Made by a program: the position numbers and the translations under genes. DNA of 63,125 nt, counting the filler, from Lenisia limosa (taxonomy: Eukaryota; Protista; Breviatea): assembly GCA_001655205.1 (NCBI GenBank). It is 8 parts of 8 records of this genome, joined end to end, with 100 filler letters (N's around TTAATTAATTAA, not from the genome) between each part and the next. Parts side by side here need not be neighbours in the genome. Positions count along the whole stretch, not along the records: positions 28,278 to 35,604 come from LPNZ01003137.1; 7 more parts are not named here. One strand, given 5' to 3'. Below the pieces are notes generated by a model. It did not search any database. It saw only the letters and a program-made list of their open reading frames with translations, and had not been told where the DNA came from. Below are positions 27,324 through 35,710 of the stretch, piece by piece. Each line of letters begins with the position of its first letter. The stretch's first letter is position 1.

Positions 27324-29190
27324 GCCAATTATTTCAACATCAAAAAGAATAGTTGAAAAAATTATTTATTTTCAATTAATTGGTCTACTGAAGAGTTACT
27401 GCTTATACCTTTTGACCATGTTGAATATAAAGAGCATATATACTATATATATGTGCTGGAGCGCCAAAACTCCAAATTTTATAATATAACTCCGAATTTT
27501 ATTTTTCCAACAACGCACAAATAAGTTCATATTTCATGAAAACAAAGAAAAAATGTACATAAAACATAAAATGAAGACAATAGAATACTGTTTTTTCCAT
27601 AAAAGAGCAAAATTGGATCACTTTTTTTTTGCTGATCTTGCCTTGATCTTGAAAAAAAAAAAAATTCCCCTGAAACGTCATTCTTTTACCAAAAGGCTCT
27701 TGAAGATATAATATACGAAATAGTTCATAGATAAAATCAGCAAAAGNNNNNNNNNNNNNNNNNNNNNNNNNNNNNGAGAAACCGTTGAGGCGTTTGAGAA
27801 GCTCAACTTTTTTCACCCTGTAAGTTGGAATGTAGTTTGTTTTCCACTCCGCTCCCTGTCTAATATTGAGCATTGCTATTGTAAGAAGCTCTCTATGAGA
27901 GGAAATCACCCACTCACGCTTCTCTATCTGATTTATCTTTTACCATTTGACCTTATTCAGTGGCACCATGGGGAGGAAAAAGGCAGTTCTTTACTTTGAG
28001 GAGAAGCTTCAAGGAATGGAGGTAAGAGATATTTGGGGAGTAAAACCAAATATCCTGACAAACATGGAAAAAGATCATATTCTCAAGGAGATTGCTGAGC
28101 TGATGGTGAATCTGCCACCTGATTCAATCTATGACCAGGCTTCGTTCTGCATGTACCCAATGGCAAGTGGCTACGCANNNNNNNNNNNNNNNNNNNNNNN
28201 NNNNNNNNNNNNNNNNNNNNNTTAATTAATTAANNNNNNNNNNNNNNNNNNNNNNNNNNNNNNNNNNNNNNNNNNNNTGAAACAAAAAAGCCCAAATAAA
28301 CTCTGTTGGGAAATGAGAAGTCTGAAATGGACCTGGTCACCTTCACAGAATACTTCATAATAAAAATATTTGTGTTTAGGGTTTGGGTGGGGAGGGGTAA
28401 GGAAACTGTGATGAAGAGTATTGGCGTAAAAAGGCACTAATCATAAACATTAATCTGAAGCTCCCAAACAAAAAAAAAAACCACAGATTGACAAAAACAA
28501 ACAAAAAAAATGACACAAACACATTGCCCAAGAGGGTGAGGTTTTCCAAGATTGGAATAGGTAAAAAGAAAGCGAATATAAACATGATAGTCATCAGTTT
28601 TACGTTACTATTCAGTAAACAGCAGAATGACCTTCCTTCCCGTACCTGTTTTGCTGAAGCAGACTGTTTGTGATTACTTCTGCTCTTCCCCATTTCAAAG
28701 TATTACGGAAAGAAATAGTACGCCTATTTATACTCAACAGACAGATGAGCAGCTCCCCTTCGATGATAGATGATCTGGAGATGGGCAGATGGTGAGGGCG
28801 GAGGGCTGTTCTTTCCTTCTCCCCCTTTTCTTTATTATCGTTTGTTGAGAGTTGGAGTAGTAGTATGGGTCAAGAAGAGGCTGAGAACGGGAGACGGGGC
28901 TGGACGGAAAACGAAACAAAAGATTGGCGCCGCCGGGCAGTATACGATTCCTTCTATCTCTGGACGGGGAGGAGGCCTTTCAATCAATATATGCAATAAT
29001 TTTGGTTGTTGCCAGTTTTGTTTATCACCTGCATTTTCACATTTTCATTCCCACTCGAGTTATAAATAAGTTATCCCCCCTACACCCACTCACCACCGAC
29101 TCCTGTTGAATACCCCAATAACACAAACGAAATAAACGAACAACGACATGCATCGATCTAGGCATGGAATAAAATAAAGGCGGTAACAAC

Positions 29191-31150
29191 TTAGATGAGG
29201 TCAGCGATGTTCTAAACGGTAAGACCCAGGAAAGAGGAATGGGGAAAAAAAAAAAGACAGCATGATGACATTCCTCTCTTACGACGGGGAGATCCTCAAT
29301 GGCAGTCTGGTAGAAGGACTCGATCTCTTGGAGAGCACCGATGTCCTCGGAAGTGACAAAGTTGATAGCGGCACCCTTACGGCCGAAACGACCACCACGT
29401 CCAATACTGCAACAAGTCAGTCTTATCCATTTCAAGCTATTTTTGGTATTTCAAGCCACAGCAAGAAAGGAGAAAAAAAAGGCATTTTAAAGCATACCGA
29501 TGGATGTAGTTCTCCTTGTCAGTGGGAAGATCGTAGTTGATGACGAGAGACACGGACTGGACATCGATACCACGAGCAAGAAGATCGGTGGTGATGAGAA
29601 CACGAGAGGCGGCGGCGCGGAACTGACGCATGATAAGGTCACGCTTCTCCTGGGACATCTCACCTAGGATGTAAAATGAAGAATTAAAACCACTAAGAAA
29701 AATGTGATAAAGCTCGTTAAGAGAGCCGCATACCGTGCATGCAAGAGACAGTGAAGTCCTTAGCGCGCATTTGCTCGGTCAGCCACTCGACCTACGCAAT
29801 TAGGCGTGGAACGTGAAAGCGCTTAAAGAAAGAAAAGGAACCGTCAGACCCGAAAGATGATAACCCCCATTGTTGTGCAAACGTCAGGAAGATAATAAAG
29901 TGTCATCATTGGTATGATTTAACCAGGGCAGATTATCGCCACCTACACGACGACGGGTGTTGACGAAGATGATGGCCTGGGTGATGGTGAGGGTCTCATA
30001 GAGATCGCAGAGAGTATCGAACTTCCACTCCTCCTTGTCGATAGCAACACGGTATTGGCTGATACCTAGGGTATGAGCAGTTGTCAGTCTTCAGAGAGAT
30101 GAATGGGACAGTGTGCTTACCTTCAAGGGTGAGCTGCTCCTTCTTGACGAGAATACGGATGGGGTTACGCATGAACTTCTCAGTGACCTCGAGGACGTCA
30201 ACGGGCATGGTCGCGGAAAGCAACACAACCTGGACGGACTCGGGGAGGTTCACGAAGATGTCGTAGATCTGAAGAGTGAGGAAAACAATTCGAGATTGGG
30301 ACCCAATAACAATCTTAAAAGATCTTTTATAATGGTATGCAAAGGTAGAAGGCCCAGACCAAGGCATACCTGCTCCTTGAAACCGCGAGAAAGCATCTCA
30401 TCGGCCTCATCGAGACAGAACATACGGAGGGTATCGACCTTGAGGGCTTGACGGTTGATCATGTCGTTAACACGGCCGGGAGTACCGACAACGACGTGAA
30501 CACCTTCAGCGAGACGAGCCATATCCTCACGGACGTTGGTACCACCGATGCAGGCATGAACCTTAGCATCCATGTAGTCACCAAGGGCAACGAGAACCTG
30601 GGAGGTCAGAAATGAATCGAACAAAACTCGGAAACTAAAAACGGGCACTAGAGTCTCACCTTCTGGATCTGCTGGGCAAGTTCGCGAGTGGGGGCAAGAA
30701 CAAGAGCTTGGATTTGGTTGATCTTAACATCAATAGCCTGGAGGATACCGATGGAGAAAGTGGCGGTCTAAATAGGTTACACACCTCAGTATAGGGTTGA
30801 ATAATCACCTTTCCGGTTCCAGACTGAGCCTGGGCGATAACATCACCACTCTTCATGATAGGGACGATACCACGCTGTTGGATGGCTGAGGGAAGCTCGA
30901 AACCATAAGCGTAGATACCCTTGAGGAGATCAGTCTTGAGCTCTAGGAGGAGTGAGAAAACAAATATCAGTCGACACAATTAACAAAGCTGTTTAAAACA
31001 ATCACATACCCATTTTGTCGAAAGTCTCATAGACTTCATCGTAGTTAGAGGCGATTTCGCCTGTTTGTTCTGTGCTAAAGAGGGTAAAGACTGGAATTTG
31101 GGATAGATATCATAATTACACTTCATTAATACTGCTTCAAACCTGGCCAT
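29191..31150 (-). CDS. eIF4A: Eukaryotic translation initiation factor 4A (DEAD-box helicase), 11 exons
   Basis: Complete reconstruction with ten GT-AG introns: [59 protein letters not shown] at 31150-31148, TAA at 29193-29191. Confidence 0.97.
29840..29913 (-). ncRNA. Box C/D snoRNA, snR39B/SNORD2-like, in eIF4A intron 7
   Basis: On the minus strand: box C ATGATGA (29909-29903), D' CTGA (29887-29884), D CTGA (29847-29844), and a short acc/ggt terminal stem. The guide ATCATCTTTCGGGT is complementary to the conserved LSU rRNA sequence ACCCGAAAGATGGT. Confidence 0.85.
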
Positions 31151-33014
31151 ATTTAAAAAGGCTCTTCTTTCACTAAAAAAAAGCCTATAAAGGAGCAGGT
31201 AACCCTATTTGAACTGAACTGAACTGAACCTCCTCCATTAACTCTCTGAGTTACCGCTTGCTATCCCCTCTCTATGTCTCCTTTTCTCTAAGTAGTTGAA
31301 GTCAGTGACAAATTTTTCTAATTTTGAGGGAGGGAGACGTCCACCCTTCTTTACTCGCCTTCACCAAATTTGAATTTACTGAGGCATGGAACACGCCTTT
31401 GGGAACAAAGATGTCCTTAGATGGCTTCAAAACCACAATATTAATTGTCAGTCACTTCTGGAACCGCAGTCCTTGATTGAGGTGGGTTAATTCTCAAATA
31501 TGGCTTGAGCGTCGCAAATTCTGTTTCCGAGAGAATTTCCTCCATTCTTTTCTGATATGAACGGCTTCTTATTTTGTTATCAACAATTGCTGCGCGTTTC
31601 AGGACATCTTTTTAGAGTATTTATCGCTTTAGACAATCGAGCAGTTGGTTGCGATGATAGAGGACAACAAAGATTCCATGGGAGCTAGCCCTGCAGTTTT
31701 AAAACAAGCTGCTTGTATGAAAGGGATACGAAATTATTTAATGAATGTAAATGCCTATTTACACGATAGGCTGGGCTTGTTTTTTTGTTGTTTGTTTTCA
31801 ACTATTGTCTGATTTTTCAATATTTTAGCCAACACAGCGTTGATTTTGGAGTTCTGTTTCATTCCCTATCACTCTCTACTACCCTCATATCCTACNNNNN
31901 NNNNNNNNNNNNNNNNNNNNNNNNNNNNNNNNNNNNNNNNNNNNNNNNNNNNNNNNNNNNNNNNNNNNNNNNNNNNNNNNNNNNNNNNNCAATCGATCAT
32001 TGTATTTCCTGCCGAGCATGGTATTATTGACAGAGTTTATGTAACCCTTTAGCGTATCGAGAAGAAATTGCTGCACTTAACAACGACATTCAAGTCCTTT
32101 CGCTTGTCAAGGAGTCCAAGGATTTTGAGTATGCAATCATTGAATGAGTTGGTCTAACATTGTTATTGAATGTTTGGCTAGTTTGGCACTTTGTTGAGAT
32201 GGTTGGTGATATTTTTGAATATTGGATGTTGAATCAATGGAAGGTCTTAAGGACGAAGTTTTGTCAAAAGATAATTTGTAATGGGACTGTAAAAGTGTGT
32301 AGAAACGGTTTTGGATGTTGCTGGCGTCTGTTTTTTTGGTTCATTCTCCATCCATAACCTATTCTAGGAAGGCGCTTTTGGATCACAAAAATGAGGCCAA
32401 GACACTTCTCACCAAAGCAAGCCAGAGAATGTAAACATTTCTTGTTAGCCCTTTCTATCGGTTCTACTCCGCTTCCTATTATGATTAGGCTGTTTTTTTT
32501 CTTTTTCTTATATGTTCTTCGTATTTGTGCTGATTTTGATGGTATTTAATGTATTTCTTGTAAAGTATGGTTATTGTGGAACCCTAATATTATAATGTAT
32601 GATGTTCATGAACACAGGATATAGTATTTCATCAGTTTATCACCGCTTACTGGGACACTATTGGGGAAAACATAATAAAATACATCCAAAACTTCTCACA
32701 AGCGAAACAAAAGCTCAACACAGCTACCAGTATTGTAAAGAAATAATAAAACCTGTTATGCAGGACTGCGCTGAGATACCAAATTCAGCCACTCATATAG
32801 CTCCTCAAACCCCCGGAGATCCAGGGCTGACGTCACAATCACTAGGGAAATTAATGATTAAGGCAGTTATCAATGAATCATTTCCCCTTATGTAGAAATG
32901 TGAATAATCCATCAAGGGTGTAATACCGTATGGGCTTCACTTCGGTTCGAAAAGACTGAGTTTCTCGATAAATCCTATCAATATTTAACCAGTATTTTTC
33001 GAACCGAAGTGAAA

Positions 33015-34708
33015 CTAATCACCATCCACCATTATGCTAGTAGCGATGTTGATACCCTCAACTCCCAACAGAAAGTCAGACACCTCTCGCCCACTCTGTA
33101 TTCGATCGTCAAGGTTGATGTTGATATTGAGCGCGTTTCTAAGCAACGCGTGATCTTTTCCGATCATTGAGTCTCTGAACTGTAAATTGGGACGCCATCC
33201 AATGCACAGCGTATAGAAATGTAGTAATATGAAAAAGTGCAGGTACAAACGAGAGCAAAGTACTGCAAAAAGCCCCCCACCCTTTATTCATAACCAGCAA
33301 CAACGGCTTTGAACGAGCTTTGTCGTCAGTCATTAATTTGTTGAGCAAGTACGCCGCCGCATTGAGAGACAATAAATTGGAGGCGTCAATGACAAACTGG
33401 AGGGTCAGCACGTGGTGTTTGGGGCAACACGATACGGGAAAACATTGATACCTATCGAGCATAGAAAGCAAACAAATCAAACTTAGATACCCCCACACAA
33501 GTACACTCTCANNNNNNNNNNNNNNNNNNNNNNNNNNNNNNNNNNNNNNNNNNNNNNNNNNNNNNNNNNNNNNNNNNNNNNNNNNNNNNNNNNNNNNNNN
33601 NNNNNNNNNNNNNNNNNNNNNNNNNNNNNNNNNTCAACCTGGGGGTCAAAAATGGAACCTGGAAACAAAAATAAATCGGAGGTATGTTATTATTATACAT
33701 GTAATAGTGGTGAAGTATTCTGTCACTTAAAAACAGAACACCATAGAATATGATATCTTTTGCGTGTAAATTACATGAAAAATATATTATTATTGTTCTA
33801 AAAGGCCAAAAACAGAAATCCAGCCCCGAGGTAAGGTAACAATGGAATCTTACGTAAACTCTATGGAGACCCCCCCCCCCTCAAATCAACTCTGTTAATG
33901 TGAGAAACACACGAGTTGAAAAAAATCAAAATACAATAAAAGGCCGCGCTTCTGCAGCCTCGTATCCCATCAACAAAATAAAATAAGGAGAAGAGCACTA
34001 CCCTGTCAAAAGCAGCTTGGAATCCATATTTTGCTTGTATCCAAATAATGATCAAGCATATACATGACCAGGGGTCGTTGTTTGAAAGAAATCCTTATCT
34101 GTTCCCTAAATATAGAAACAATCGCCTTCACCAAAAATAAAAAAAAAACCGAAGAGAAAAAAAAAAAAAAANNNNNNNNNNNNNNNNNNNNNNNNNNNNN
34201 NNNNNNNNNNNNNNNNNNNNNNNNNNNNNNNNNNNNNNNNNNNNNNNNNNNNNNNNNNNNNNNNNNNNNNNNNNNNNNNNNNNNNNNNNNNCACCAAATT
34301 ATAACCCCCATACCTTCTTCCCTGACAGCTTGATTTGCACGGACTCCACGCCAATCTATCGGGGTGACAACAAAACAAAGAGGAAGCCACGTCATAGAAA
34401 GACATGTTGTGACTGTGGTGATGACCAGAGGTGATTTGACAAGGTTGGGTAACAATGAAACAATTATCCAATTCGCAATACCGTGGGGTGAATAGCATAG
34501 TTAGTAAGGCACTGTAGAGGATGAAGATCAAAAGCCCCAACCGTGGAGAGGTAAGAAGATAACTGACGCTCATAGTTCTTCTTATTTCTTTGTTTATAAG
34601 CTGTTGGGAGGTGAGAAGCCATGAGGAATACACGGACGTACTCTGAATTCGACGAAGCAATGACGTTTTCCCTGATCCCTCTGTTCCAACAAAGAGGATC
34701 GTCTGCAT
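33015..34708 (-). CDS. Arf-family small GTPase, ARL16-like
   Basis: MQTILFVGTEGSGKTSLL (G1), HPT|IGVE (G2), ESVL|FVIDASN, LLLVMNKG|D (G4). The G3 exon probably lies in the N gap at 33512-33633; the 3' end is uncertain. Confidence 0.7.
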
Positions 34709-35710
34709 TTCACCTACATTTACATTTATAGGGTTTGTTTTCAAATCAGCGTTTCTTCTTTTCCAAAAGTAGGGACAACTATTGGTTGAGCGTTATCCCA
34801 GCAATTTTTATTATATTTGTAAAATTATTGTCTTTCATTTGATGATTTGATGAAGCTTTGAAACAGTTTAGTGACAGTATATTTCATTCATCTATCACAC
34901 AATCGAATTACAAACAGCACGAACAATTTTGTGACCTTGCAGTTTCCTCAAAATGTCAACAAAAATGAGTAAGCTGAGCTCTTCCAAGCCTCTTCTATTC
35001 ACCTTTCTCACGAATTTAGTCACAATTAATCCGTATAACCAGTCGGCGGCCAAACAAGCTCTTGATACTGAGGCAATAGAGGTGTGCTTTGATATTTGAT
35101 ATGAGCAGATTACATCTAACTCCTTTTGTTTGGTTCCCAAGTATATGACAGGGCCTTCTTCATATTACGTTTCCATAATAGCATCACAGTAGTACCCATG
35201 CTACCAGGATAGACGATAAGGGGACACCATTCACTACACTCACGCTTGAGTGACTTTTTATTGTTTGACATGGAGGCACGCAGAAAGCTGTGTTCACCTA
35301 GCCGTGAGGCCAATGATTGGATGAATTAAGTTATAGTTTAATCTTATAGCTCTTATAATCGTGATGGTGTGAACAGCTTTGGCCAGATACTGACATTTTT
35401 ATTATAATTATAATCTCTGCATAATATGATAAAGATAACAGTTTTCTATATTCTGAACCACTTATCTGAGAACGATAATCAACATGAAGTTGGTGAAATT
35501 CTTTGTCCTCTTTCATTCTTTACTTCCCCCCCTTTTATACTTTAGCCTTGTTTTGTTTTTCTCTGCTATATTATTGTCACATAAATCCTTGACAGTGAGC
35601 CTCCNNNNNNNNNNNNNNNNNNNNNNNNNNNNNNNNNNNNNNNNNNNNTTAATTAATTAANNNNNNNNNNNNNNNNNNNNNNNNNNNNNNNNNNNNNNNN
35701 NNNNCCCCCC

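Follow-up and report, generated by a model that had tools for sequence, protein, structure and literature searches.

Intron 7 of an eIF4A gene of Lenisia limosa carries an element that we predict to be a box C/D methylation-guide snoRNA, an ordinary new member of a guide family already described, though its host is unusual. Most probably it is a functional homologue of yeast snR39b, vertebrate SNORD2 and Neurospora CD47 that was relocated into eIF4A independently of the vertebrates. The presence of a related guide in an eIF4A family gene of both vertebrates and this organism looks like coincidence or convergence among translation-gene hosts, and not like ancient inheritance.

The element lies in the piece covering positions 28278-35604 of the window (the whole stretch of DNA that was analysed, 63,125 nt). 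This piece contains three N gaps, and its minus strand carries an intron-rich eIF4A gene, whose exons are given here by their ends, with translations checked:

29191..31150, minus strand: eIF4A gene, 11 exons, predicted product of about 392 amino acids
31150-31143, 31074-31010, 30942-30809 and 30767-30660, minus strand: eIF4A exons 1-4
30597-30370, 30268-30121, 30065-29947 and 29791-29734, minus strand: eIF4A exons 5-8
29663-29498, 29406-29283 and 29211-29191, minus strand: eIF4A exons 9-11
29946-29792, minus strand: intron 7, 155 nt, GTAGGT...GCGTAG, phase 0

Reading frames were checked one exon at a time, and homology searches were likewise run on individual, unjoined exons. Exon 1 of the model (8 nt, ATGGCCAG, 31150-31143) was placed from frame and splice consensus only, and the numbering of intron 7 as the seventh depends on it. 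All ten introns have GT...AG ends and sizes of 41-155 nt, and a CTRAY-like branch site is present near the 3' end in most of them. Intron 3 (30768-30808, minus strand) is unusually short at 41 nt, a feature that may help to place the organism.

We assign the host gene to canonical eIF4A (eIF4A1/2-type) because in the PDB exons 6 and 9 favour eIF4A-I over eIF4A-III (65.6 bits vs 54 for exon 6 and 82 bits vs 62 for exon 9), because of the names of the database matches, and because exon 5 is recognised as a DEAD-box segment (Pfam DEAD, 3.6e-14). A word search with the exon-5 ORF returned the organism's own protein at 100% identity, followed by matches 64-80% identical and named 'translation initiation factor 4A'; in an index of 5.8 billion protein clusters no eIF4A relative more than 80% identical in exon 5 was found. 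Intron 7 is indeed the longest intron of the gene, as had been claimed beforehand: the other nine measure 41-101 nt, at least 54 nt less, and this extra length is consistent with the carriage of a 74-nt insert. The intron splits ...FVNTRRR from VEWLTEQ..., a site that maps via PDB chain 6zmw_j to residues 284/285 of human eIF4A-I, where the second RecA domain begins. A CTAAT branch-point-like site is found about 10 nt upstream of its 3' splice site.

Within intron 7, the predicted snoRNA is separated from the 5' splice site by 33 nt and from the 3' splice site by 48 nt. Read along the minus strand, its order is ACC-A-ATGATGA-CACTTTATTATCTTC-CTGA-CGTTTGCACAACAATGGGGG-TTATCATCTTTCGGGT-CTGA-C-GGT, and its ends match exactly those of the snoRNA with boxes C, D' and D that the earlier note had put at 29840-29913. 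Its parts are:

29913-29840, minus strand: candidate box C/D snoRNA, 74 nt, in intron 7
29913-29911 with 29842-29840, minus strand: end stem, ACC paired with GGT, 3 bp
29909-29903, minus strand: box C, ATGATGA, perfect RUGAUGA
29902-29888, minus strand: D' guide, the 15-nt spacer CACTTTATTATCTTC
29887-29884, minus strand: box D', CTGA, perfect
29877-29871, minus strand: CACAACA element, between box D' and the D guide
29870-29864, minus strand: C'-like element, ATGGGGG, degenerate and weak; in the cmscan alignment it falls on the AUGAUGG box of SNORD2
29863-29848, minus strand: D guide, 16 nt, TTATCATCTTTCGGGT, abutting box D
29847-29844, minus strand: box D, CTGA, perfect

The marks of the box C/D class are present, with box C near the 5' end, box D near the 3' end and a short end stem closing the element. 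The internal pair is uneven: box D' is a perfect CTGA, whereas C' is the degenerate ATGGGGG. A generic C/D scan of both strands of the 7.3-kb piece, for RTGATGA followed 45-120 nt later by CTGA with an end stem of at least 3 bp, returned the intron-7 element as its sole candidate, with 0.095 expected from shuffled sequences. The 18-mer composed of guide and box D (ATCATCTTTCGGGTCTGA) has a single occurrence in the window when up to 2 mismatches are allowed (0.00 expected, 100 shuffles), and a chance origin of this motif is excluded. The predicted fold of the snoRNA is no better than that of shuffled sequences (z +0.73); such a lack of excess stability is usual for C/D snoRNAs. In the MFE structure box C pairs with the guide, a trivial result of the complementarity of GAUGAU and AUCAUC.

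Rfam, which the earlier note had named as a check, gave sub-threshold matches only. The snoRNA was missed when the whole piece was scanned at E<=10. A scan of 171 nt produced weak matches to SNORD2 (RF01299; 16.0 bits, E 1.3) and to TtnuCD19 of Tetrahymena (RF02295; 17.1 bits, threshold 70). Both align on the guide and box D, the SNORD2 alignment being local and confined to the 3' half. The SNORD2 score stays under the gathering value of 37 bits.

The D guide TTATCATCTTTCGGGT pairs with LSU rRNA ACCCGAAAGAUGGUGA through 16 contiguous pairs, 14 of them Watson-Crick and two G·U, with no mismatch; the pairing was scored against ACCCGAAAGATGGTGA in contig L118, a natural LSU-like fragment. Counted five bases back from box D, the D+5 rule arrives at C29852, which stands opposite the G of the CCCG within ACCCGAAAGAUGG. 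In yeast, 25S-Gm805 is guided by snR39b (PMC8053091). The corresponding assignments are human 28S position 1509 (Gm1509), guided by SNORD2 (PMC10324135; PMC3511168), Arabidopsis Gm812, guided by snoR39BY (PMC3511168), and Neurospora 26S-Gm785, guided by CD47 (PMC2780460). The D guide is predicted to select the G equivalent to yeast Gm805, human Gm1509 and Neurospora Gm785. The 16 pairs and these assignments sustain what was proposed at the outset, namely that the guide before box D pairs with conserved LSU rRNA and points to the G of CCCG that is Gm805 in yeast.

Two contigs deserve a remark of their own. L118, an IMG/VR contig, contains about 100 nt of eukaryotic LSU rDNA, a fragment that gave no Rfam match at gathering, and L121, from a viral collection, contains 360 nt of eukaryotic LSU rDNA (LSU_rRNA_eukarya, 172.7 bits). 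Both are probably chimeric or misclassified contigs.

The complement of the D' guide CACTTTATTATCTTC is GAAGAUAAUAAAGUG, on which the D'+5 rule would point to the A at position five. In the window this complement was found nowhere except at the guide itself, and the D' guide remains an orphan. Together with the 3-bp end stem, the weak C' element and the sub-threshold Rfam scores, the orphan guide could be taken to indicate an inactive relic or a chance look-alike that is unexpressed or does not assemble a snoRNP. Against this, boxes C, D and D' match their consensus perfectly, nothing breaks the 16-nt guide, the site that it targets carries a methyl group in yeast, human, Arabidopsis and Neurospora, and close to zero such elements would be expected by chance. 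Functional intronic snoRNAs, moreover, commonly have short stems and weak C' boxes. We consider an inactive or chance element very improbable.

Relatives of the guide were sought in a metagenome collection with the pattern TAYCATCTTTCGGGNCTGA, which is unmatched by rDNA itself. At least 112 loci were obtained, most of them evidently real snoRNAs of both architectures, in which the C box precedes the motif by 55-65 nt (D type) or by 10-17 nt (D' type, plant-like tandem clusters included). Many of these homologues show a canonical C box at the spacing of a snoRNA and lie in introns of ribosome-related genes. The collection is biased to fungi, algae and plants, vertebrates and many animal lineages being absent from it, and many of its contigs are short. 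At 34 of the 112 loci listed the guide is hosted by an intron of RPL7 (uL30), on the sense strand and about 70-230 nt upstream of an exon; this next exon downstream encodes KEKR..IFKRAE.YVKEYR. Run in tblastn, the ten exon peptides of the window gene revealed eIF4A exons beside the guide at none of the 112 loci listed. The hosts recognised are given below; those other than RPL7 come from visual inspection of the flanking ORFs or from tblastn with locus peptides:

RPL7 intron (first part): L006, L009, L013, L014, L016-L019, L025, L031, L044-L049, L053, L061
RPL7 intron (second part): L063, L069, L073, L074, L077, L083, L084, L086, L090, L104-L107, L109, L111, L115
NOP56/58-like gene: L007, L113
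RPSA: L005
FGAM-synthase-like gene: L039, L095, L103

Among the loci listed, a Gm805-type guide of fungus-like eukaryotes seems to reside most often in RPL7. In yeast, the RPL7A/B introns contain snR39/snR59 (Am807), which guide modification of a neighbouring site; this hosting matches the most frequent metagenomic host and not the window locus. Yeast snR39b is not known to be hosted in TIF1/TIF2. In Drosophila, Me28S-G1083b, which we take to be the counterpart of this guide, is hosted in Nop60B. When the window snoRNA was aligned with the homologues, the best local score was 31, within the null distribution (95% = 33) and not significant.

We also compared the eIF4A genes of three lineages among the closest that were found, with exon 5 identities of 80% (L001), 78% (L002-4) and 76% (L119/120). 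In all three, exons 7 and 8 are contiguous, with no intron at that site, and neither the guide motif nor a C/D candidate was found in the gene.

Vertebrate SNORD2 resembles the window snoRNA in its rRNA target (28S G1509, the yeast G805 equivalent), in the guide core UAUCAUCUUUCGGG followed by CUGA, and in a host of the same family (EIF4A2). The vertebrate guide stands after box C and before D', however, whereas the window guide stands before the terminal box D, and the window snoRNA scores 16 bits in the RF01299 model against a gathering value of 37. The introns differ in number as well: counted along the gene, the vertebrate copy occupies intron 3, in the stretch of EIF4A2 towards its 5' end (up to exon 6), and the window copy the seventh of ten at residue 284/285. 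SNORD2 is located in the third intron of EIF4A2 (PMC10324135), which is also where the chicken homologue, with its guide on the 5' side, is found (PMC2653536). The Rfam SNORD2 consensus likewise has its guide directly after box C, i.e. at D', and agrees with the chicken homologue in confirming the earlier note's statement that human SNORD2 sits in an EIF4A2 intron with this guide at D'.

Fungal snoRNAs offer another close parallel. Neurospora crassa CD47 is an intronic snoRNA of 75 nt whose D-box guide AAAUACCAUCUUUCGGGU-CUGA pairs with the target over 16 positions with 0 mismatches (PMC2780460); CD47 and the fungal snR39b-type snoRNAs form family CD_47 of 'The fungal snoRNAome'. The window snoRNA shows the same CD47-type traits, being intronic, about 75 nt long and equipped with a D-box guide to the G805 equivalent (26S-Gm785 in Neurospora), in which ...AUCUUUCGGGU is followed by CUGA. 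It differs from the fungal-type metagenomic copies in several respects. Their host is an RPL7 intron and the window host is eIF4A; they have in common an internal GCGACTAG...GATGYTGTYGC element, which the window snoRNA, with its unrelated internal sequence, lacks; and they are without a canonical D' box and guide, whereas the window snoRNA has the D' CTGA. S. cerevisiae snR39b shares the target nucleotide. In Tetrahymena TtnuCD19 (RF02295) and Arabidopsis snoR39BY the guide core is the same and precedes a D or D' box, but the genomic organisation differs, and the similarity is sub-threshold (17 bits vs 70). A move of the guide from D' to D, as earlier suggested, is unnecessary, the D-box guide being found also in Neurospora CD47, in TtnuCD19 and in most metagenomic homologues.

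The CACAACA element may preserve something of the history of the molecule. Of the 105 non-redundant upstream regions taken from homologues, 13 contain the motif C[AC]CAACA, as compared with 0.66 expected (the loci include L007, L039, L064, L066, L087, L095, L098, L103 and L113), and in the homologues it mostly serves as the D' guide (..CCCAACAGTCTGA). In the window snoRNA it precedes GGGG and not CTGA. A C[AC]CAACA D' guide would presumably pair with rRNA just 5' of the G805 site, going by the yeast 25S sequence. CACAACA here may be a remnant of an ancestor with two guides, or it may serve as an accessory pairing element.

We favour independent capture of the guide by eIF4A because the number of the intron, the guide side and the majority host are different and because such a guide is absent from the intervening lineages that were compared. 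The sharing of this host family with vertebrates could also have been selected independently in the two lineages. A selected pairing might mean that the snoRNA feeds back on eIF4A splicing or output, as human SNORD2 does, or might couple this LSU modification to the dosage of eIF4A; we think selection of this kind very unlikely. It is likewise very unlikely that the snoRNA acts in cis on eIF4A splicing in addition to guiding methylation and that this explains a convergent pairing. There is a human precedent in the structure formed by the SNORD2 intron of EIF4A2 (PMC10324135), and the MFE structure of the window intron pairs box D and its tail (GACGG) with the end of exon 7 (CCGUC), beside the 5' splice site. 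The whole-intron fold is, however, no more stable than shuffled sequences (z +1.26), no long stretch complementary to the branch-point region was seen, no alternative exon is evident, and the intron is short.

The earlier note had left a choice between a very ancient snoRNA-host association and convergence, and the distribution of hosts, the intron and the guide side speak against the first and for the second. An ancient association would have a snR39b/SNORD2 guide residing in eIF4A since before the vertebrate split, lost or moved elsewhere in other lineages and switching between D' and D. It has in its favour that the host gene family and the rRNA target are those of vertebrate SNORD2, and that both snoRNAs use UAUCAUC (with its two G·U pairs), UACCAUC being common elsewhere; the count of none in 112 loci also leaves room for eIF4A hosts outside a sample from which vertebrates and many animals are absent. 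It is nevertheless very improbable, given that UAUCAUC is used also by homologues in NOP56/58-like and FGAM-synthase-like genes, that intron numbers (third vs seventh, residue 284/285) and guide sides differ, that 34 of the listed loci lie in RPL7 and none in eIF4A, that three of the closest eIF4A lineages found are without the intron, and that yeast, Drosophila (Nop60B) and plants use other hosts.

The boxes, the complementarity of the guide, its place in the intron, the departure from chance and the spread of hosts among homologues are direct observations. For the preferred reading, that of a functional guide captured independently by eIF4A, we infer expression, snoRNP assembly, methylation and the direction of the host change from sequence comparisons. 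The snoRNA would be released from the spliced and debranched intron 7 by exonucleolytic trimming down to the C/D core, and the kink-turn core would be bound by Snu13, Nop56, Nop58 and fibrillarin to form a snoRNP. The D guide would then pair with LSU ACCCGAAAGAUGGUGA and direct 2'-O-methylation of the G805 equivalent during LSU maturation. Its move into eIF4A, one more highly expressed gene of translation, would have been specific to this lineage and independent of the SNORD2-EIF4A2 pairing of vertebrates.

With this analysis, intron 7 of eIF4A gains one well-supported snoRNA annotation together with an rRNA target. Guides are known to hop among highly expressed genes of translation and ribosome biogenesis, and a Gm805-type guide is now seen in at least five host genes: RPL7 (most often, among the listed loci), NOP56/58-like, RPSA, FGAM-synthase-like and eIF4A (in this organism and in vertebrates). 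It is a small data point on snoRNA mobility, in which the target stays fixed while the guide changes host.

Elsewhere in the 7.3-kb piece, Pfam searches of the remaining ORFs gave nothing informative. A sub-threshold Rfam match to snoZ30 (22.9 bits, E 0.57) at 35313-35417 on the plus strand was taken as chance, the U6-methylation guide part of the model not being conserved there. On the minus strand at 34640-34744, beside an assembly gap, there is a short P-loop-like coding segment, ILFVGTEGSGKTSLLRRI, with a weak Pfam match to ABC_tran (E 0.002); the segment may belong, as an exon, to a gene of the small GTPase or NTPase type.
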